Positions 1,869 to 62,061 of a stretch of 64,000 nt of DNA are shown piece after piece. The translations under genes and the position numbers were made by a program. How positions within the stretch are numbered: the stretch's first letter is position 1; every line of letters begins with the position of its first letter. A model generated the notes under the pieces. The model saw only the letters and a program-made list of their open reading frames with translations, made no database searches and had not been told where the DNA came from. The stretch covers positions 178,832,057-178,896,056 of the forward strand of contig NC_092374.1 of NCBI RefSeq assembly GCF_030028105.1. The letters run 5' to 3'. This DNA comes from Mobula birostris. Taxonomy: Eukaryota.

Positions 1869-4451
1869 ACCTGCTGAGTTTCTCCAGCATTTTGTCAGTG
1901 TTGCAGGAAGAACTCACTGAATCAGGCAACGTCTGTAGAGGGAGGTAGTCCAGATAGTTTTGACCTAAAACATCAACTATCTGTCCATTTCCCTCCACAG
2001 ACACCGCCTAACCTTCTGAGTTCTCCCAGTTGCTTCTTTGTTGTTCACATTCAAGCACCTGCAGTCTCTAGTGCAAGGACTCGAGGGCCTGAGTTGTAGG
2101 GAACATTGGGCAGGCCAGGACTTTAACCCTTGATGTATAAGAGATTGAGGGGTGACCTTAGAGAGATGTATAAAATCACGAGGAGAACACACACAATCTT
2201 CTTTCCGAAGAAAGTAATAAAAAAAAACTAGCAGGCATAGGTTTAAAGAGAGGTGAGCAATTTTAAAGGGATCTGCAAGGTAACAGAGGGTGGTGTGTTT
2301 ATGGAATAAGTTGTATGAGAAAGTGTTTGAGGCAGGTAAAATAAACTATTAAAAAGACACCTGAATGGTTACAGAGATAGGAATGGTTTAACAGAGAACG
2401 GGGAAAGCAGAAGAGTACAGCATAGGAACAGGCCTTACAGCCCAAAGTGTCTGCGTAAAACAAGATACCAAATTAAACTAATTCTCTTCTGATTCCAACA
2501 GATCCATATTTCTCTACTCCTGGATATTCTTGTTTTTATCTAACAGTTTTTTAAATGCTGTTATTGGAATTGAATTCACCACCACAACCTCTAGCAGCTT
2601 GTTCTAAGAACCTACCATGCTCTGTATGAAAAATATGTCCTTTAAAGTTTCGCACTTTAAATCCATGTCTTCTACAACTTAAGATTTCTTCTCTGAGGAA
2701 GTGATTCCTACCATCAACCTATCGTAGTTTTATAAACTATGAGGTCTCCCAGCCTCTGCTGCTCCAGAAAATACAACCCAAGTTTACCAAAGTTCAAAGT
2801 AAATTTATTATCAAAGTACATGCTGTATATGTCACCCTATACAACCCTGAGATTCTATTTCTTGTAGGCATACTCAACAAATCTGTAGAACCATAACAGA
2901 ATCAATGAAGTATCTATGGAAATGAATCAACAGTCGATGTTTTGGGCTGAGACCCTTCTTCAGGACTGAGAAGGAAGGGGGAAAACACCAGAATGAAAAG
3001 ATGGGGGGGGGGAGGAGGATAGCTAGAAGGTGATGGGTTAAGCCATGTGTGTTAGAAAGGTAAAGTGCAGGAGAGGAAGGAATCTGATTGAGGGGAGTGG
3101 ACCATCGGAGAAAGGGAAGGAGGAGGGGACCCAGGGGGAGATGATAGGCAGATGAGAAAGGGCATTCAACCTATGTGCAAAAGACAACAAACTGTACAAA
3201 TAAAAAAGGATAGAGCTAATAATATTTATTAATTAAACTATATCGAGAACATAACATGGAGAGTCCATTGGTTGGGAACATTTCAATGATAGAGCGAGTA
3301 AAGTTATCCCCTTTGAAGGGAAGAAACTCTTCCTGAACCTGGTGGTGTGAGTCCTGAGGCTCCTGACCTCCTTCCTGATGGCAGCAGCAAAAAGAGATCA
3401 TGTCCTGGGTGATGGGAGTCCCCGATGATGGATGCTGGTTTCCTGCATCAGTGTTTCATGTAGATGTGCTCAGCGGTGGGGAAGGCTTTACCCATAATGA
3501 GCTGGGCCATATCCACTACCATCTGTAGGATTTTCCATCCAGCCTCTCCATATAACTCATCGCTCTAATCCAGGCAGTACCTGGTGAACATCTGCTGCAC
3601 CCTTCCCAAAGCCCTACCTTCTTCCTGTAGTGGAGTGACTAGAATTGCCCTTAGAGGAAGAATGTGGAGCCTTTGAGCCATTTAGAGGAATATAAGCCAA
3701 ACACAAGCAAATGGCAACAAAAGAGACTGCAGATGTTGTAATTTAGAACAACAAACAAAACACTGGTGGAACTCAGTGGGTCAGACAGCATCTGTGGAGG
3801 GGAATGGACTGTAAAAGTTTCAGGTTCAGATCCCTCAACTGGTCTGGAAGAGAAGGGGAAGCAATCAGTATTGAAAGGCAGAGGGAAGGGGTGGAGCAAG
3901 AGTTGGCAGGTGACGGGTGAATCCAGGTGAGGGGAGGGAAGTGACAGGCAAATGGGAAAAGCAGAAGTAGAATGGCATTAACAACGTGGAGTCAATGGGT
4001 GGAAGTGATGATGAGGTGAAGGTTTGGAACCTGACAGGAGAGGGAAGTGGAGCATGAAATAAAGGGAGGGGATCCAGTCGGAGGAGTGTGTGGGTGATAG
4101 GCAGATGGAGAGGGTGAGGAAAGGAAAGAGATCGAGCGATGGAGGGGAGCATGTCAGGAGGAGAGAGGAAAGCGACAGAGCCCTGCAGAAAGATCTTGGC
4201 ACAAATTGTCGACTGCACGTTTTTTCCATACATGCTGTCTGGCTGGCTGAGTTTCTCCAGCATTTTGTATGCATTGAAGGGACAGAGGGGGACCAATTAA
4301 GGAAACATCTGCGCCTTTTGTGTCTCAATGCCTACGCGCTGAGGTGACATCTGAGGTTCTCTTTGGAGATGCGACTATCTTAGATGAGTTTCTAGTTCAA
4401 CATGAGCTAAGCACATCAGAGCACTCTGATCCATACCGTATTGCAATGCAT

Positions 4452-4478
4452 GATTTTTTTTTGTTGTTTTGTTTACAG
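4452..4478 (+). promoter_or_regulatory. Splice acceptor for the ZNF coding exon
   Basis: T-rich tract GATTTTTTTTTGTTGTTTTGTTTACAG ending at 4478, 13 nt before ATG 4492. This implies an upstream exon, which I did not identify. Confidence 0.7.
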
Positions 4479-4491
4479 ACTGCATTGGGGG

Positions 4492-5664
4492 ATGGAGAGT
4501 CACTGGGAATGGACTGCACTTGACGAACGCCAGGGCTCCCAGCGAGGACGCCCCTCGGTTTCCCAGAGCAATTGCCCAGTGGCTGCGATGTCACGCCATT
4601 TCCTGACGGGGAAGAAGCCATACAAGTGTGAGCTGTGCAGCTGGACCTTTGCCCAGCCCTCCGACCTGGGTGCCCACCTGCGGATGCACACGGGTGAGAG
4701 GCCGTTCCGGTGTGAAGTGTGCGGCAAGAGCTTCAGCCATTCCTCCAGCCTGGTGAAGCACCGTCATGTCCACACTGGCGAGCGGCTCTTCCAGTGCAAG
4801 GTGTGTGAGCAGGCGTTCGCGCAGGCCACCGCCCTCCTGCAGCACTGGCGCCTGCACACGGGCGAGAAGCCCTTCCAATGCAAGACGTGCCGCAGCACCT
4901 TCACCAAGCAGTCGCAACTGGTGCTGCACCGGCGCAGTCACGCCGGCGGCCGGGGCTTCAGGTGCAAGGTGTGTGGCAAGGCATTCATGACGCCAGCCCG
5001 GCTGGCTGAGCACAAGTGCGTCCCCAAGGACGGGCGGCTTTTCCGCTGCGAGACGTGCGGCAAGGACTTCTGCAGCGCTGCCTACCTGGTGGTGCACCAG
5101 CGCCTCCATACCGGCGAGAGGCCCTTCCGCTGCGAGGTCTGCAGCAAAGCCTTCGGCAGCCTCTCCTACCTACGCATCCACCGACGCAGCCACGCCCAGG
5201 TAAAGCCCTTCCACTGCGACGTCTGCGGCAAGGTGTTCTGCAACGTCTCCTACCTCCGCATCCACCAGCGCAGCCACACGGGCGAGAGGCCCTTCCGCTG
5301 TGAGACCTGTGACCGGGACTTCTGCAGTGCATCCTACTTGGTGATCCACCGGCGCATCCACACAGGGGAGAGGCCGTTCCACTGCGAGGCCTGTGATAAG
5401 GCCTTCCTCAGCTCGTCCTACTTCCTCAAGCACCAGTGCGTCCCGACGGGGGACAAGCCCCTGAAGTGTGAGTTCTGCAACAGGGGCTTCACGCAGCTGG
5501 CACACCTCCTCAAGCACCAGCGCACCCACACTGGCGACAGGCGCTTCCAGTGCGACTTCTGCCAGCACTGCTTCACCTATTCCTCCTCCCTGGAGATACA
5601 CAGGCACACCCACTCCGCAGAGAAACCTCCCATCCTCCCTTCAAGCAAGCCAAAGAGTACCTGA
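4492..5664 (+). CDS. C2H2 zinc-finger protein, 12 tandem fingers (about 390 aa), no KRAB/SCAN/BTB domain visible
   Basis: Uninterrupted GC- and CpG-rich ORF with 12 C-x2-C-x12-H-x3-H type units and TGE(K/R)PF linkers. ATG 4492 is in good Kozak context (GGGATGG). The ORF-track start at 4441 lies in the intron. An upstream coding exon cannot be excluded. Confidence 0.93.
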   Translation: MESHWEWTALDERQGSQRGRPSVSQSNCPVAAMSRHFLTGKKPYKCELCSWTFAQPSDLGAHLRMHTGERPFRCEVCGKSFSHSSSLVKHRHVHTGERLFQCKVCEQAFAQATALLQHWRLHTGEKPFQCKTCRSTFTKQSQLVLHRRSHAGGRGFRCKVCGKAFMTPARLAEHKCVPKDGRLFRCETCGKDFCSAAYLVVHQRLHTGERPFRCEVCSKAFGSLSYLRIHRRSHAQVKPFHCDVCGKVFCNVSYLRIHQRSHTGERPFRCETCDRDFCSASYLVIHRRIHTGERPFHCEACDKAFLSSSYFLKHQCVPTGDKPLKCEFCNRGFTQLAHLLKHQRTHTGDRRFQCDFCQHCFTYSSSLEIHRHTHSAEKPPILPSSKPKST

Positions 5665-10585: not shown

Positions 10586-12445
10586 CATAGTCATAATCAT
10601 ACTTTATTGATCCCTGGGGAAATTGGTTTTCATTACAGTTGCACCATAAATAATAAATAGTAATAGTAATACTACTTTTAGTAAATAGTAATAGTCATGG
10701 AAATAATAAATAGTAATAGAATAGTAATAGAAAAATAGTAATAAATAGTTAAATAGTAATATGTAACTTATGCCAGTAAATTATGAAATAAGTCTGGGAC
10801 CAGTCTATTGGCTCAGGGTATCTGTCCCTCCAAGGGAGGGGTTGTAAAGTTTGATGGCCACAGGCAAGAATGACTTCCTATGATGCTCTGTGCTGCATCT
10901 TGGAGGAATGAGTCTCTGGCTGAATGTACTCCTTTGCCCACCCAGTATATTATGTAGTGGATGGGAGACATTGACCAAGATGGCATGCAACTTAGACAGC
11001 ATCCTCTTTTCAGACACCACCATGAGAGAGTCCAGTTCCATCCCCACAACATCACTGGCCTTACGAATGAGTTTGCTGATTCTGTTGCTGTCTGCTACCC
11101 TCAGCCTGCTGCCCCAGCACACAACAGCAAACATGATCGCACTGGCCACCACAGACTCGTAGAACATCCTCAGCATCGTCCGGCAGATGTTAAAGGACCT
11201 CAGTCTCCTCAGGAATTAGAAACGGCTCTGGCCCTTCTTGTAGACAGCCTCACTGTTCTTAGACCAATCCAGTTTATTGTCGATTTGTATCCCCAGGTAT
11301 TTGTAATCCTCCACCATGTCCACACTGACCCCCTGGATGGAAACAGGGATCACCGGTACCTTAGCTCTCCTCAGGTCTACCACCAGCTCCTTAGACTTTT
11401 TCACATTAAGCTGCAGATAATTCTGCTCACACCATGTGACAAAGTTTCCTACCGTAGCCCTGCACTCAGCCTCATCTCCCTTGCTGATGCATCCAATTAT
11501 GGCAGAGTCATCCGAAAACTTCTGAAGATGACAAGACTCTGTGCAGTAGTTGAAGTCGGAGGTGTAAATGGTGAAGAGAAAGGGAGACAAGACAGTCCCC
11601 TGTGGAGCCCCAGTGCTGCTGATCACTCTGTCGGACACACAGTGTTGCAAGCACACGTACTGTGGTCTGCCAGTCAGGTAATCAAGAATCCATGACACCA
11701 GGGAAGCATCCACCTGCATTGCTGTCAGCTTCTCCCCCAGCAGAGAAGGGAGGATGGTGTTGAACGCACTGGAGAAGTCAAAAAACATGACCCTCACAGT
11801 GCTCGCTGGCTTGTCCAGATGGGCGTAGATACGGTTCAGCAGGTAGACGATGGCATCCTCAACTCCTAGTCGGGGCTGGTAGGCGAACTGGAGGGGATCT
11901 AAGTGTGGCCTGACCATAGGCCGGAGCAGCTCCAGAACAAGTCTCTCCAGGGTCTTCATGATGTGGGAGGTCAATGCCACCGGTCTGTAGTCATTGAGGC
12001 CACTGGGGCGCGGCGTCTTCGGCACAGGGACGAGGCAGGATGTCTTCCACAGTACAGAAACACTCTGGAGCCTCAGGCTCAGGTTGAATACGTGGCGAAG
12101 TATTCCACATAGCTGAGGGGCACAGGCTTTGAGCACCCTGGTACTGACACCATCTGGTCCTGCAGCCTTGCTTGGGTTGAGACGTTTCAGCTGTCTTCTC
12201 ACCTGTTCAGCCATGAAGCCCACCGTGGTGGTTTCGTGTGGGAGAGGGGTATAGTCATGAGAGCAGGGTGGGGGACTGTAAGGAGGGGTAGGAGGGGAGA
12301 GTGGAATATGTGTTGGTTGGGGGCCGACAACAGATGTGAAATCTGTTAAAGAACAGGTTAAGTTCGTTGGCACTGTCCACACTGCCCTCAGCTCCAGTTT
12401 GCCGAAACCCAGTGATGGTCCTCATCCCACTCCAGACCTCTCTCA
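10586..12445 (-). mobile_element. Rex1/Babar-clade LINE, 5'-truncated, reverse transcriptase largely intact
   Basis: ORF 11216-12382 has RT motifs (KAAGPDG, YRPVALTS, DFSSAFNT, GAPQGTVLSP, FSDDS, YKYLG). The C-terminus continues in 10805-11176 after a frameshift or stop, followed by a 3' UTR with AATAAAG and a tandem tail. Confidence 0.9.
10650..10765. repeat. Imperfect (AATAGT)n microsatellite in the LINE 3' UTR
   Basis: Repeated AATAGT/AAATAGTAAT units; the sister copy at about 1760-1790 has only a short version. Confidence 0.7.
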
Positions 12446-33077: not shown

Positions 33078-36000
33078 GCCTCCTGAGAGCCACCTGTCGC
33101 TTACGGGAGGACCAGAAGGCAGGCAGGGGGACGTGGAAGCTGAATGTTAAGCTGCTGACCCCAGAGAACATCGAGGAACTAGAGAAGGAGTACACAGGTT
33201 GGAGAACCTTGAAAGCCTTCTTTGATTCCCCGGTTCACTGGTGGGAAGCTACCAAGGAGAACATTAGGAGGTTCTTCATTCGCAAGGGTATCCAGAAAGC
33301 AAGGCAGGAGCAGAGGGAACTGCGTAAACTCCAGACAGAGTTGCAGCAACTTCTCCTTCTGCAGTCGAAGGGGGTGGATGTCAGGGAGGAACTGCGAGAG
33401 GTGAAGGGCCGGCAAGCCCAGAACCTCGCCGCCGAATCCTCCAAGATCATCTTCCGATCAAGGGTCCGAACCGTGGAGCAGGACGAGACGTGCTCACGCT
33501 TCTTCTTCCAAAAGGTGCACAGGGGGAGCTCTGTGATCCACAACCTTAAGGAAGAGGACGGCTCAGTCGCGACCTCGCAGACCGACATACTGAGGATCTG
33601 CAAGTCCTTCTATGCCGGTTTGTACGACGAAAAGGCCACAGAATCCACAGCCTCCCGCAACTTCCTGTCGTCTATCACGCAGGTCTTAGACGACGGTAAG
33701 CGGGAGAGTCTGGATCAGCCACTGACCCTGGACGAGCTGACAGGCTCCATCCGTTCCTTTGGGTCGGGTAAGACTCCCGGAAGCGACGGCTTACCGGCTG
33801 AGTTGTACTCGGCTCTGTGGAACTGGATGGGCCCAGACCTGCTGGAAGTGTACAACGCTATGCTTCTGGCGGGTAGCATGTCTGAGTCCATGAGGAAGGG
33901 CATCATCACCCTCATCTACAGGCAGAAGGGGGAAAGGGAGGACATTAGGAATTGGAGACCCATCTCTCTCCTCAATGTGGATTACAAGATCCTGTCCAAG
34001 GCTATCGCCAACAGGGTCAGGTCTGCTCTGGGACAGGTGATCCACCCGGACCAAACCTGTGCTGTACCGGGCAGGAAGATCTCAGACAGCCTCGCGCTGC
34101 TGAGGGACACCATCGCCTACGTGCAGGACAGGGGGGTGGACGCCTGCCTGGTCAGCTTGGACCAGGAGAAAGCCTTCAACAGGATATCGCACACATACAT
34201 GGCGGACGTGCTCTCCAAAATGGGATTTGGTGAGGGGATCCGGAATTGGATCAGACTGCTCTACGCAGACATCCGTAGTGCAGTCCAGGTCAACGGGTGG
34301 GAAACAGACAGCTTCCCCATCAGGTCTGGAGTCAGGCAGGGCTGTCCCCTCTCCCCTGTCTTGTTTGTCTGCTGTATAGAACCCTTTGCCGAGGCCATCA
34401 GGAGGGATGAGGGCATAAGAGGGGTGACGCTGCCAGGCAGTGGAGGGACCCAAGTGAAAACCTCCCTGTACATGGACAACGTCACCGTCTTCTGCTCTGA
34501 TCCGAGGTCAGTTCGCAGGCTGATCAGCATCTGTGAACAGTTCGAGCTAGCGACGGGGGCCAGGCTCAACCGCACGAAGAGCGAAGCCATGCTCTTCGGC
34601 AACTGGCCAGACCGATCCAGCGTCCCCTTCACCATCAGGTCTGACCACATGAAGGTGTTGGGGATCTGGTTCGGAGGGGCCGAGGCGTGCAACAAGAACT
34701 GGCGGGAGCGGACTGCCAAGGTGAAACAGAAACTGGGACTGTGGGGAGGGCGCTCCTTGTCGATAACGGGCAAGAACCTGGTCATCAGGTGTGAGGTGCT
34801 CTCAGGGCTGCTGTACTTGGCGCAGGTCTGGCCCGTCCCCCGCTCCTACAGCTTGGAAATCACCCGGGCTGTCTTCAGATTCGTCTGGGGATCCAAGGTG
34901 GAGCGGGTGAGACGGACCGCCATGCACAAGTCCCTGGACAATGGGGGCAAGAACGTCCCCAATGTCGCCCTCACCCTGATGGCCAGCTTCGTGTGTGGCT
35001 GCATCAGGTTGTGCGTGGATCCCAGATACGTGGGCACAAAGTACTACTATGTGCCCAGGTTCTACCTGTCACCCTGGCTATGAAGGATGGGTCTGGCCCC
35101 ACTCCCGCGCAACGCCCGCGTCAGCTGGTCGTTGCCCCCTTACCTGTCCTTCGTAGAAAAATTCTTCAAGACCAACGCATTTGACCACAGGGCCATCAGG
35201 CAGTGGCCGGCACGTAGTGTCCTGCAGGCACTGCAGGAGAAGGACGTGATGGACACAGTGGCGTGGTTCCCTGAGCAGACCGTCCAGTTCATCTGGCAAA
35301 ATGCCTCATTGCCAGATCTCACCAACAGGCACAAAGACCTCGCCTGGCTGGCAGTGAGAGGAGCCCTCCCAGTCAGATCCCTCCTGTACGCCCAGAACGG
35401 TTCCTCCACACCCCACTGCCCACGGGAGGACTGTAATGGGTTGGAGTCGGTGGCTCACCTCTTTGCACACTGTGGGTTCGCAAAGAAGGTGTGGAAGAGA
35501 ATGGAAGGGACAGTACTAAGATTCATGCCCAGCAGCTGCATTACCGAGGACTCCGTGATCTACGGGCTGTTCCCGGGGACGCACACGGAGACCAACATCC
35601 GGTGCTGCTGGCAGATCATCAATTCGGTGAAAGACGCTCTTTGGTCGGCCCGAAACTTGATGGTCTGCCAGCTGACAGAGATGTCCGTGACTGAATGCTG
35701 CCGACTGGCACACTCTCGTCTGCAGGAGTACGTTCTGAGGGATGCACTCAAACTTGGTGCAGCCACCGCGAAGGCCCGGTGGGGAAGGACCACAGTTTAA
35801 CGTTCATCACCCGTAGGAGGGGGAGAGGTTGGGTGGGGAGGAGACCTACCCTCATCAGCGGTGTGGACAGATAATCAACATGGTGCCCAAGGAGTGGGTG
35901 CAATTGTTAATTTGGGAAAGTATTAGAGCCATTGCCTGCCTTTATTGTTGAAAATTTTGATTGTTATTAAGTCTTAACTCTTGACCAAGGGTTGAGAGTA

Positions 36001-47659: not shown

Positions 47660-49757
47660 AAAGATGTGATTGGTAGGTGGGAAGCCTTCAAAGGGGAAAT
47701 ATTGAGAGTGCAGAGTTTGTATGTTCCTGTCAGAATTAAAGGCAAATTGAATAGGAATAAGGAACCTTGCAACTCTGATAAAGAAGAAGAGGGAGTTGTA
47801 TGAAATGTATAGGAAACAGGGAGTAAATCAGGTGCTTGAGGAGTATAAGAAGTGCAAGAAAATACTTAAAAAAGTAATCAGGAGGGCGAAAAGAAGACAT
47901 GAGGTTGCCTTGGCAGTCAAAGTGAAGGATAATCCAAAGAGCTTCTACCGGTATATTAAGAGCAAAAGGATTGTAAGGGATACAATTGGTCCTCTTGAAG
48001 ATCAGAGTGGTCGGCTTTGTGCGGAACCAAAGGAAATGGGGGAGATCTTAAATAGGTTTTTTGCGTCTGTATTTACTAAGGAAACTGACATGAAGTCTAT
48101 GGAATTGAGGGAATCAAGCAGTGAAATCATGGAAACTGTACAGATTGAAAAGGAGGAGGTGCTTGCTGTCCTGAGGAAAATTAAAGTGGATAAATCCCCA
48201 GGATCTGACAGAGTGTTCCCTCAGACCTTGAAGGAGACTAGTGTTGAAATTGCGGGGGCCCTGGCAGAAATACTTAAAATGTCGTTCTCTACGGGTGAGG
48301 TGCCGGAGGATTGGAGAGTGGCTCATGTTGTTCCGTTGTTTAAAAAAGGATCGAAAAGTAATCCGGGAAATTGTAGGCCAGTGAGTTTAACGTCGGTAGT
48401 GGGTAAGTTATTGGAGGGAGTACTAAGAGACAGAATCTACAGGCATTTGGATAGACAGGGACTTATTAGGGAGAGTCAACATGGCTTTGTACATGGTAGG
48501 GCATGTGTGACCAATCTATTGGAGTTTTTCGAGGAGGTTACCAGGAAAGTGAATGAAGGGAAGGCAGTGGATATTGTCTACATGGATTTCAGTAAGGCCC
48601 TCGACAAGGTCCCGCATGGGAGGTTAGTTAGGAAAATTTAGTCGCTAGGTATACATGGAGACGTGGTAAATTGGATTAGACATTGGCTCAATGGAAGAAG
48701 CCAAAGAGTGGTGGTAGAGAATTGCTTCTCTGAGTGGAGGCCTGTGACTAGTGCTGTGCCACAGGGATCAGCGCTGGGTCCATTGTTATTTGTCATCTAT
48801 ATCAATGATCTGGATCATAATGTGGTAAATTGGATCAGCAAATTTGCTGATGATACAAAGACTGGAGGTGTAGTAGACAGTGAGGAAGGTTTTCAGAGCC
48901 TGCAGAGGGACTTGGACCAGCTGGAAAAATGGGCTGAAAAATAGCAGATGGAGTTTAATACAGACAAGTGTGAGGTATTGCACGTTGGAAGGGCAAACCA
49001 AGGTAGAACATATAGGGTTAATGGTAAGGCACTGAAGAGTGCAGTAGAACAGAGGGATCTGGGAATACAGATACAAAATTCCCTAAAAGTGGCGTCACAA
49101 GTAGATAGGGTCATAAAGAGAGCTTTTGGTACATTGGCCTTTATTAATCAAAGTATTGAGTATAAGAGCTGGAATGTTATGATGAGGTTGTTTAAGGCAT
49201 TGGTGAGGCCGAATCTGGAGTATTGTGTTCCGTTTTGGTCACCAAATTACAGGAAGGATATAAATAAGGTTGAAAGAGTGCAAAGAAGGTTTACGAGGAT
49301 GTTGCCAGGACTTGAGAAACTCAGTTACAGAGAAAGGTTGAATAGGTTAGGACTTTATTCCCTGAAGCATAGAAGAATGAGGGGAGATTTGATAGAGGTA
49401 TATAAAATTATGAGGGGTATAGATAGAGTGAATGCAAGCAGGCTTTTTCCACTGAGGCAAGGGGAGAAAAAAACCAGAGGATATGGGTTAAGGGTGAGGG
49501 GGGAAAAGTTTAAAGGGAACATTAGGGGGGGCTTCTTAACACAAAGAGTGGTGGGAGTATGGAATGAGCTGCCAGATGAGGTGGTAAATGCGGGTTCTTT
49601 TTTAACATTTAAGAATAAATTGGACAGATACATGGATGGGAGGTGTATGGAGGGATATGGTCCGTGTGCAGGTCAGTGGGACTAGGCAGAAAATGGTTTG
49701 GCACAGCCAAGAAGGGCCAAAAGGCCTGTTTCTGTGCTGTAGTTTCTATGGTTTCTA
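47660..49757 (+). mobile_element. Young CR1 LINE, 5'-truncated ORF2 in one frame with two nonsense codons
   Basis: ORFs 47796-48641, 48663-48944 and 48948-49685 are in the same frame (TAG at 48639 and 48942). [26 protein letters not shown] and KFADDTK motifs; (TTTCTATGG)n tail. Confidence 0.92.
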
Positions 49758-50749: not shown

Positions 50750-50980
50750 ATGCTTTTAAATACCTCTATAAGATCACCCCCAGTCTCATATGCTCCAATG
50801 TAAAAGGTCCCTACCTGCTCAACCTAACTCCATAACTCAGTCTCCGGAGTCCAAGCAGCACCCTGGTAATTCTCCTCTGCACTTTTTCCGGTTTAACAGC
50901 ATATTTTCTATTCTGGGGTAACCAAAACTGAACACAATATTCCAAATGCGACCTCACCAGCGTCTAGTACAACTTCTAGT
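50750..50980 (-). mobile_element. Degenerate CR1 fragment
   Basis: Minus frame KLY*TLVRSHLEYCVQFW. Confidence 0.65.
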
Positions 50981-51339
50981 GTACAATTTACCAAAAAAAA
51001 ATTGAACGCGATCCAAAACCATAAATTCTCCGACATTTAAAATGTTTCGATCTGCAACATTAATTGTGTTTATCTCTCTGTAGACACGGCTTAGGAATTT
51101 TAGGAGATTCTGTTTTCAGTTCTGGAAATCCCCTGGATTCAATTTCCTCCCCTACTTTACAATTTTGAAACTGCTGCAGTAGGGACGATATTGTTCTTGA
51201 GTCTCCAATATTCTCTAAATTCTGAGCATTGAAAATTGAAAATAAAGAAGACTGACACATTTAGGCCTCAACTGAAGTGATTGTGAGATTAACAATATGT
51301 TCAGCTTCAATCACACCGTAAATTGACTTTGGGGCCGCA

Positions 51340-51720
51340 GATTCTGTCGCAGGTGGATTCAGTTTCACATTTGTTTTGTTGTTTATAACAATAAATGTGT
51401 TCAGATTTGACAGGATTTCGTCAATATCAATCTAAGTACTGTTCCGGGATTTACCGAAGTTTCAGGTTCTCCTGCGGTAAGACCGGAGTCGAAAGCGCAG
51501 GCCAATTGAACTCTGAGCGATGACAGGGCTATGTTGGTTTCAGGGTGTAGGAACAAAAGTCACTTGGACTGGAGCCTGAATCGGTAATTCCGGGAATCCG
51601 TCAGATTTCTCTCTAAGCGATTTGGGAAATTAGTATAAAGATATAGCATGCGCATTTGCGCAGCTGAACGGGAGGGCGGTGACTTGTGTCAGTAACAGGC
51701 TGTGTGACTCATCGGATATT
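51340..51720. promoter_or_regulatory. CpG-rich regulatory element upstream of B2M (enhancer or divergent promoter)
   Basis: GAS TTCCGGGAA at 51588-51596; NRF1-like GCATGCGCATTTGCGCA at 51646-51662; GC box at 51674-51679; AP-1 TGACTCA at 51705-51711; ISRE-like CAGTTTCACATTT at 51360-51372. Local CpG enrichment. Confidence 0.5.
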
Positions 51721-52639
51721 TATCCCAGGTCTGCAAACCTTGTGTTCCCTGTAAGAAGAAATGCAAAACAAGAAATGTTTAGAGCAGTTTTTAACATTAA
51801 TATTGGGTAACCAGACCATTGCCAAAGGATAAACCCTAGCTGAGATTTTTTTTTTAGCATCATAGTTGGGTAACCGGGGTCATTGCAAAAGGATAATAAC
51901 TAGGTGAGAGTTTATAACATAAATGTCTAATTTAATGTATAATTCGAGTTTATTGTCATATGCGCAAGTACAGATATACACAAGTGCAATAAAAGCTTAT
52001 TTGTAACAGTATTACAGGCAAATAGCAACAAAACATAAATTCTACAAGTATGCACATACGACAAAAAGTCCATTTATCCTTGGATAATCTGAATCATATT
52101 TCGTTTCCGTATTTATCTTCCTATTATGTCTTTTTCTCTCTCGATTTGCAGAAATATCGTTTTGTATATGATGTTTATTTTATCGTGTAAGTTTCATAAA
52201 ATGCATGTTAATTTAAGTTCATGTCAACTTATGTACTGTGCTGCTGATGCAAACAATCTAATATTCATGCCATTTGTACATTTTCAGTACATTTGTACAT
52301 TTCAAGTTTATTGTCACAGGAGACTGCAAAATGGTAACTACCTAGTTAATTTTTTAGCATTATTGTGGTATGATCTGAGGCATTTTAAATGGATAAGGTG
52401 TAACTGAGCTCTGACGAGTAACGGATATACTGAATAAGCTCACCGTCCTATGAAAACACTAGAATTGGCTAGAATCCAACTGCCTCGGAATAATTATTCC
52501 ACAAATACATGATTTATGAAATTCCAGCAAATCACTCTAATGTTTTGCTTGAATGTTTCATACTGTGCCTAAAGTAGATTTGTCAATGCTGTGACACAGG
52601 CAGTCGGAATTGCAGAGTGACTTTCCTTATTAAATTTTC

Positions 52640-52912
52640 TTAAGAGATCGCCGAGGGTCGCGTCTGAACGATCCGCCCTCGTTTCCCGGTCCGCAAACTC
52701 TACCGAGATCTTTCACCCGGAGACTGATGATGCGTATATTCTAAATATTACCATTGGTTGTGCCGAGGCAAAAGGGCGGAGTGCCGTTTTCTTATTGGTA
52801 CCGGGCGGCCGGTTGGTTTCGCATAATCTGAGGGTGCAAGCGCGAGTGATCAGTCGCGGAGACCAAGAAGCGAATTTCTTTCTAGTAGCTGGAGTGTGCC
52901 GTGTGTCCGAAA
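52640..52912 (+). promoter_or_regulatory. B2M proximal promoter / CpG island with MHC-type X-Y module
   Basis: X1-like CCCGGAGACTGATG at 52716-52729 followed by ATGCGT; Y box ATTGG at 52753-52757; second ATTGG at 52794-52798; GC boxes at 52774 and 52803. Directly upstream of the signal-peptide ATG. Confidence 0.75.
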
Positions 52913-52964
52913 ATGATGCTACGTGTTCTGATCCTGCTCTCTCTCGGGTTGATTTGTGCGGCGA
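52913..52964 (+). CDS. B2M: Beta-2-microglobulin exon 1 (signal peptide MMLRVLILLSLGLICAA, phase-1 donor)
   Basis: Hydrophobic leader followed by a perfect GTAAGT donor at 52965. The leftover A joins the GT of exon 2 in frame (AGT, Ser). Absent from the ORF track. Confidence 0.88.
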
Positions 52965-53399
52965 GTAAGTAAATTTATAAACTCGAAATTTTGCAGCTGC
53001 TGGAAATACTGAGTGATTGAAATATTGATACATTTAAGTGTCTGGAAGAACTCAGCAGGTCAGCCAGCGTCTGTGGAAAGGAATAAACCGTCTATCTTTC
53101 GGGTCGAGATTGATGAAGGATCTCAGCCCGAAACGTCAACTTATTCCTCTACGTAGATGCTACTTGACCTACTGACTTACTCCAGCACTGAGTAAATTTG
53201 TCGTTTTGGGTCTGTAGGGATTAGGCAGGGTTGGGAAAATTCTCGGGTCCTATTTGGCCCTATACTCCAGTGCCCGCTCACTGAAAGAATACCCTAGGTC
53301 CGGATTCTTAAGTCTTCGTATCAAAGGCGACCTCCCCATTTACGCTAACGCCCCAAGACCTGTGTCTGGGCTTTATTAGCCTTCGCTCAAAGAGTCCTC

Positions 53400-61782: not shown

Positions 61783-62061
61783 GTGTAAGTTCACCACAGG
61801 TCAACGTCTACACCTACAAACCCATCGTGACAGGTGAAAAGAACGTTCTCCTTTGCCATGCCAAGGAATTCAGCCCACCCAACATCAAGCTGGAATTGCT
61901 GCAGGATGGTGCTGCGATACAAAACACCAAACAATCTGACATCAGCTTTGAACCAAACTGGAAATTCAAATTGACCACTTATGTTGAGATCTTCCCCAAG
62001 GAAGGAGCGCAGTATGCCTGCAGGGTGCTGCACAATGGCGATACTAAAATTGTTAAACTTG
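61783..62061 (+). CDS. B2M: Beta-2-microglobulin exon 2 (Ig C1 domain)
   Basis: CTGCAG acceptor at 61782 and GTGAGT donor at 62062; 279 nt, phase 1-1. VSSPQVNVYTYKP..NVLLCHAKEFSPPNIKLELL..QSDISFEPNWKFKLT..YACRVLH..KIVKL carries both Cys residues and the SDxSF and W motifs of B2M. Confidence 0.96.

Follow-up and report, generated by a model that had tools for sequence, protein, structure and literature searches.

Does the promoter of the beta-2-microglobulin gene (B2M) of the manta Mobula birostris carry an SXY (S-X1-X2-Y) enhancer, and is such a module closer to those of MHC class I or of class II genes? SXY control of B2M is textbook knowledge for mammals, and conservation of the module throughout the vertebrates has been described. 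Such modules, with their NLR co-activators, form the master switch of antigen presentation, and their functional dissection has been almost entirely mammalian. An initial annotation of the 64 kb stretch of DNA analyzed here, hereafter the window, had reported an X-Y box with mammalian spacing in the B2M promoter and had called it class II-like, pointing to HLA-DRA, which has the same 23-nt distance from X1 to ATTGG.

The letters and positions on which this proposal was built are correct. The X1 box CCCGGAGACTGATG (52716–52729, + strand), a presumed site of the RFX5 complex, matches the consensus CCYAGNRACNGATG at 13/14 positions, ATGCGT comes next, and ATTGG (52753–52757) begins 23 nt (52730–52752) after X1. 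This ATTGG is part of the Y box CCATTGGTT (52751–52759, + strand), the reverse complement of which, AACCAATGG, is a good predicted NF-Y site. Upstream of X1 lies an S-like box, CAAACTCTAC (52694–52703, + strand), with a core CAAACT (52694–52699) that ends exactly 16 nt before X1; it shares its position with the S boxes of mouse H2-K and H2-Eb, as given by hybrid-construct boundaries (PMC4374748). The X2 box in its conserved register is TGATGCG (52728–52734, + strand), which takes in the final TG of X1 and is a one-base variant of the CRE-like TGACGCG (6/7 positions), without the CRE core TGACG. S, X1, X2, and Y therefore stand in SXY order and all on the + strand, which is the strand of B2M. 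The X1-to-Y distance of 23 nt corresponds to 21 nt after the 16-mer X box, or 18 nt after X2; in the literature, X-Y distances of 20–22 bp and S-X distances of about 16 bp are given for MHC SXY modules (PMC4374748 metric), and the X box is usually 17–18 bp from ATTGG (PMC7753138).

Further elements flank these boxes. Downstream, there is an Sp1-type GC box, GGGCGG (52774–52779, + strand), and a second ATTGG, a proximal CCAAT box (52794–52798, + strand), 41 nt after the first. Upstream, GTGACTTTCC (52617–52626, + strand) matches 9/10 positions of GGGACTTTCC, which we take to be the NF-kB consensus; it is a putative accessory element, weak in manta, with a degenerate ISRE-like TTTC stretch downstream of it.

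The X1 match by itself is at chance level. At no more than one mismatch to CCYAGNRACNGATG, the window contains one match against 1.09 expected from shuffles, and 66 of 100 shuffles contain at least one. Likewise, GATG followed by ATTGG at 15–30 nt occurs 13 times in the window against 13.8 expected, so this loose pattern was dropped as evidence. The X1-Y composite is rare. There are 1, 18, and 137 X1-like sites in the window at up to one, two, and three mismatches, respectively; among all 137, only the present site and one three-mismatch site have an ATTGG 21–25 nt downstream, making the composite single in the 64 kb at up to two mismatches. With ATTGG at a frequency of 0.0013 per position, about 0.007 composites would be expected per window at up to one mismatch. 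The deciding test of a module beyond chance is its position and conservation.

With respect to position, the gene is B2M of Mobula birostris: the protein joined from its exons matches the beta-2-microglobulin-like protein of this species at 100% identity, and hence the gene assignment and coordinates in the initial annotation are right. Exon 1 (52836–52964, + strand) is the signal-peptide exon, with its ATG at 52913–52915 and a splice donor after 52964. Exon 2 (61783–62061, + strand; 279 nt), about 8.8 kb beyond it, encodes the C1-set Ig domain, and its product likewise shows 100% identity to the Mobula birostris protein. We placed contigs of four public runs on 52500–53100; these contigs behave as RNA, because position 52964 joins straight onto the first letters of exon 2. 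RNA run X1 has zero differences from the window, and its contig depth is 77 over 52647–52835 and climbs to 6190, 19195, and 55374 across 52836–52898; one contig of RNA run X3 begins at 52841. The main B2M 5' ends thus lie at about 52836–52880, an approximate position given that it was taken from contig ends rather than CAGE. This puts the X1 box about 110–150 bp, and the second ATTGG about 40–85 bp, upstream of the main 5' ends. S-Y enhancers are located <200 bp from the transcription start (PMC2278383), and the manta module lies within the same distance upstream of its start. The surrounding 52600–53000 is a small CpG-rich island, with a CpG observed/expected ratio of 1.2–1.36.

A minor alternative upstream exon was also observed. 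Its 3' end (50837–50865, + strand) is repeat-like sequence with a donor GT at 50866, and it is spliced via a GT-AG intron (50866–52644) to an acceptor AG at 52643–52644: contigs of RNA runs X1 and X2 break at 52643/4, and their loose upstream letters match 50837–50864 with one mismatch. Depth of this transcript is about 77 compared to >10000 for the main exon. This acceptor lies a short way 5' of the S box, so some rare transcripts of B2M cross the SXY region.

The wider locus shows several features of its own. Within intron 1, 53041–53100 is matched by hundreds of RNA contigs at approximately 85–90% identity, in three of the four runs, and the flanks of these matches are unrelated. The stretch is a transcribed repeat of high copy number, either a SINE or another transposon fragment. 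The 52 kb upstream of B2M contain open reading frames (4441–5664, +; 33209–35800, +; 11216–12382, −; 47796–49685, +) that comprise a multi-C2H2 zinc-finger one (407 aa) and several of reverse-transcriptase/LINE-like type, and inspection of the open reading frames of the 64 kb window found no MHC genes besides B2M. Between Mobula birostris and Mobula hypostoma, the B2M proteins share only 88% identity, which is low for congeners and suggests either fast evolution or non-orthologous copies.

With respect to conservation, we aligned the manta promoter with the B2M loci of Heptranchias perlo (L001), Pristis pectinata (L002), Rhinoraja longicauda (L003), and Stegostoma tigrinum (L004). Both the motifs and their spacing are conserved in these four other elasmobranchs, which was part of the check proposed along with the initial annotation. 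Common to all four loci are an S-like CAAA[C/G]T, a T-run, the core CCCGG[A/T]GAC[C/T]G[A/G]TGA, the Y box, the GC box, the second ATTGGT, and a GGC block. Each of these four loci contains a single match to the 15-mer core CCCGGWGACYGRTGA, the one at the B2M promoter. In every one of the five elasmobranchs, an indel-free spacer of 16 nt separates S from X1; from X1 to Y, Mobula, Pristis, and Heptranchias have 23 nt, and Rhinoraja and Stegostoma have 24 nt. Sequences flanking the five-species module do not align.

Conservation within the module is concentrated in the boxes. Invariant across the five species are 11/14 columns of X1, 5/6 of the S core, and 4/5 of ATTGG, compared to a single column of the X-Y spacer (52735–52749). 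The Y box is conserved in the columns GA.TGG.T, reading ACTGG in Stegostoma; the GC box has 4/6 invariant columns and a mean pairwise identity of 0.87; and the second ATTGGT is invariant in all five species, starting 41, 41, 41, 43, and 52 nt from the start of the first. Taken together, the S, X1/X2, Y1, GC, and Y2 blocks have 33/53 invariant columns against 18/185 elsewhere (Fisher p = 3e-14), where the S, GC, and Y2 blocks were bounded only after the alignment had been inspected; the blocks set a priori, X1 and ATTGG, have 15/19 invariant columns on their own. In run X7, from a closer relative about 11% divergent over 52577–52825, there are zero differences across 52693–52737 (p about 0.003). 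The module is under purifying constraint across sharks and rays. These data provide a five-species footprint at base resolution, with positions and spacings fixed since at least the shark-ray split.

The alignment also refines two of the originally proposed boxes. The S box had been read as AAACTCT and described as weak; this heptamer is indeed present inside CAAACTCTAC, but with 5/6 invariant core columns it belongs to one of the best-conserved blocks. ATGCGT (52730–52735, + strand), which had been put forward as X2-like, is present in manta, but neither it nor TGCGT has a counterpart in the other four species, and the conserved register is instead that of 52728–52734. In this register, Pristis has TGACGCG, Rhinoraja TGACGAG, Heptranchias TGACCCA, Mobula TGATGCG, and Stegostoma TGATAGA.

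Individual species depart from the common pattern. In Stegostoma, S, X1, and the second ATTGG are preserved, but the first Y box (L004, 2827–2831) reads ACTGG and X2 is the degenerate TGATAGA; the module may have decayed in part naturally, or the sequence may be a variant of the allele or of the assembly. Parts of the module appear to tolerate decay, given that Stegostoma has lost X2 and the first ATTGG and that the manta X2 is without TGACG. Perfect AGTTTCnnTTTC ISREs are found in Stegostoma and Heptranchias, 30–40 nt upstream of S, corresponding in place to the degenerate ISRE-like stretch of manta. In Heptranchias, the promoter core and the B2M ATG are separated by a minisatellite roughly 330 bp long (L001, 3641–3974; 22/33-nt units, CGGAGTGGACTGAGTGTAAAGC); it has pushed the X1-to-ATG distance to 517 nt, compared to 176–236 nt in the other species.

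We then asked which class of mammalian module the elasmobranch one resembles. For this comparison of manta and elasmobranch B2M with mouse H2-K (class I) and H2-Eb (class II), the mouse modules and their box borders were rebuilt from the primers of both SXY regions and of six hybrids, as listed in the Methods section of PMC4374748, and X1 identities were compared by hand. Geometry is largely shared: the S end is 16 nt from X1 in manta, H2-K, and H2-Eb alike, and the distance from the X1 end to ATTGG is 23 nt in manta and H2-K (21 nt in the X-box metric of PMC4374748) and 22 nt in H2-Eb. The claim that the spacing is constrained and the geometry ancient is well supported by this agreement, with 16 nt in 5/5 elasmobranchs, 23–24 nt from X1 to Y, and 16 and 23 nt in mouse H2-K. 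In contrast, the same numbers weaken the use to which the spacing had been put: a 23-nt X1-Y distance is no class II hallmark, because it is class I H2-K that shows it, whereas class II H2-Eb has 22 nt.

The X1 sequence distinguishes the two classes more clearly. Identity of the manta X1 14-mer is 11/14 to H2-K, including CCGGA, and 9/14 to H2-Eb. We labeled CCCGGAGAC, the 5' 9-mer of the manta X1, a class I-type 5' half, and CCTAGCAAC, ACTAGCAAC, or CCYAGCAAC class II-type; this half is identical to H2-K at 7/9 positions and to the ACTAGCAAC-type half of H2-Eb at 4/9. The 3' half reads GATG in manta and GTTG in H2-K. For X2, the H2-K sequence TGACGCG, in the same overlapping register, is matched exactly by Pristis and at 6/7 positions by manta. 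Parsimony on the species tree favors C as the ancestral base at the fourth X2 position, such that the manta TGAT would be a derived C-to-T change and the ancestral elasmobranch X2 would be TGACGCG, unlike the class II forms. It is this derived change that would create a run, ACTGATGATGC, identical to H2-Eb, and thereby the class II look of the manta module.

The S box separates the classes less well, even though it is decisive for NLRC5 specificity (Ludigs et al., 2015; PMC4374748). Over a right-justified 10-mer, the elasmobranch consensus of the S region has 5/10 identities with H2-K and 4/10 with H2-Eb. The manta core CAAACT compares with TAACCT in H2-K and matches the class II GGACCT at 3/6 positions; a GGACCT-type class II S heptamer is absent from the manta module. 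By these counts, the S-box sequence appears not to be diagnostic of class I versus class II. Other differences between manta and H2-K are that the manta ISRE is degenerate and not beside S, and that in manta a GC box and another ATTGG of the same orientation follow downstream.

These comparisons bear on the possibility that the module is specifically class II-like and of CIITA type, perhaps as a relic of the kinship of B2M with class II domains. The X1 3' half and next bases of manta (ACTGATGATGC) are identical to those of mouse H2-Eb, with which manta also shares the generic S-X-X2-Y geometry; GCAAACT is found beside the H2-Eb S box too, albeit 7 nt closer to X1; and mammalian CIITA is capable of acting on the promoters of B2M and class I genes (PMC4243378; PMC2278383). 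However, the 23-nt spacing equals that of class I H2-K, the X1 5' half favors H2-K, Pristis, Rhinoraja, and Heptranchias read the class I-type TGAC(G) at X2, the class II S heptamer is lacking, and the ATGCGT register is not conserved. We therefore regard a specifically class II-like module as improbable, and the earlier description of the ray B2M module as class II-like is corrected. Instead, the module appears class I/B2M-like in X1 and X2 and generic in geometry, with S favoring neither class.

Another possibility is that this is a conserved promoter made up of ordinary CCAAT, GC-box, and ATF-type sites plus a site for an unknown factor, in which case the resemblance to X1 would be coincidental and no RFX/NLR enhanceosome would form. 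The chance frequency of X1 alone is in line with this, as are the departure of the X1 core GGAGAC from the RFX half-site RGYAAC and the presence of two CCAAT boxes and a GC box, which are common in housekeeping-type CpG promoters. In addition, the IFN-gamma induction of MHC pathway genes in salmon cells is seemingly not enhanceosome-driven (PMC7573153). Set against this, the mouse H2-K X1 is also a poor match to the generic RFX half-site, a mouse module that has been dissected functionally has the same order, orientation, and two spacings as the elasmobranch boxes, and B2M is among the few known SXY targets. Moreover, across sharks and rays the 15-nt core never varies in length and hardly varies in sequence, and the S-to-X1 spacer is free of indels. 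An ordinary promoter with a fortuitous X1 is accordingly unlikely in our view.

For the same gene in mammals, an SXY module is already known. Mouse B2m is occupied and controlled by NLRC5 and RFX5, with SXY control established (PMC4374748), and the mammalian B2M/B2m SXY is described as a target of NLRC5, RFX5, and CIITA (PMC4374748; also as cited in PMC7573153). Compared by kind rather than base by base, the mammalian and elasmobranch promoters have the same kind of module at the same gene and proximal to the start, and sharks also have the ISRE and kB-type elements farther upstream. Orthologues of both CIITA and NLRC5 are reported in the whale shark (PMC8455134).

Among bony fish, MHC class I promoters of teleosts carry W/S, X2, and Y motifs (PMC7573153). 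Our own comparison for B2M covered two syngnathid loci (L005 and L006); the teleost B2M Logan contigs (P0026) are intronless transcripts and contain no promoter. Phyllopteryx B2M has CAACCTTTGCA, followed after 13 nt by an X1/X2-like CACACCGATGACGG (GTGGCACACCGATG, then ACGG) and by GTTGG 22 nt later; Syngnathoides B2M has kept the S-like and GTTGG elements and is without GATGACG. Relative to elasmobranchs, the syngnathid promoters differ in an S-X1 distance of 13 rather than 16 nt, in GTTGG rather than ATTGG at the Y position, and in an ISRE that lies downstream. Judged on these sequences, the syngnathid module seems recognizable but looser than among elasmobranchs, and syngnathids seem a poor outgroup. 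The syngnathid B2M genes (L005, 1–782 and 2001–3752; L006 likewise) are tandem duplicates beside a Death-domain kinase gene, and their duplicated promoters keep CAACCTTTGCA, with the Y-box ATTGG replaced by GTTGG.

With motifs, spacing, position upstream of a transcribed exon, and shark-ray purifying constraint all established, this stretch probably forms the core of an authentic SXY enhancer that lies in the manta B2M proximal promoter and is, in X1 and X2, of the class I/B2M type. The proteins that bind it and its co-activator we infer by analogy with mammals. X1 would be bound by the RFX5/RFXAP/RFXANK complex, the overlapping X2 by a CREB/ATF factor, and the Y box by NF-Y. Their fixed 16-nt and 23-nt spacings would hold them, along with an S-box factor, in one enhanceosome on which an NLR co-activator docks, most likely NLRC5, with CIITA possibly contributing. 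The outcome would be B2M expression coordinated with that of MHC class I, with the GC box and second CCAAT box downstream presumably serving as the basal promoter.

Our search of the literature found no description of an SXY module at a shark or ray B2M promoter; it is newly described for these genes, as a module of a kind already known from mammals. The footprint, with shark and ray spacings identical to those found in a mouse class I gene, opens to testing both how old the enhanceosome is and how old the split between NLRC5 and CIITA is. Elasmobranch B2M remains linked to the MHC, unlike that of bony vertebrates. We see about an even chance that an NLRC5-type SXY module, with 16/23-nt geometry, a CCGGA-type X1, and a TGACGCG X2, was fixed before cartilaginous and bony vertebrates split and controlled B2M while this gene was inside the MHC. 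Given the loose syngnathid match, a geometry predating that split, as the initial annotation had envisaged, is argued for mainly by the identity of spacing with H2-K and by what PMC7573153 states for teleosts. Were the NLRC5-type module that old, the division of labor separating class I-type from class II-type SXY modules would be as old as the MHC itself.
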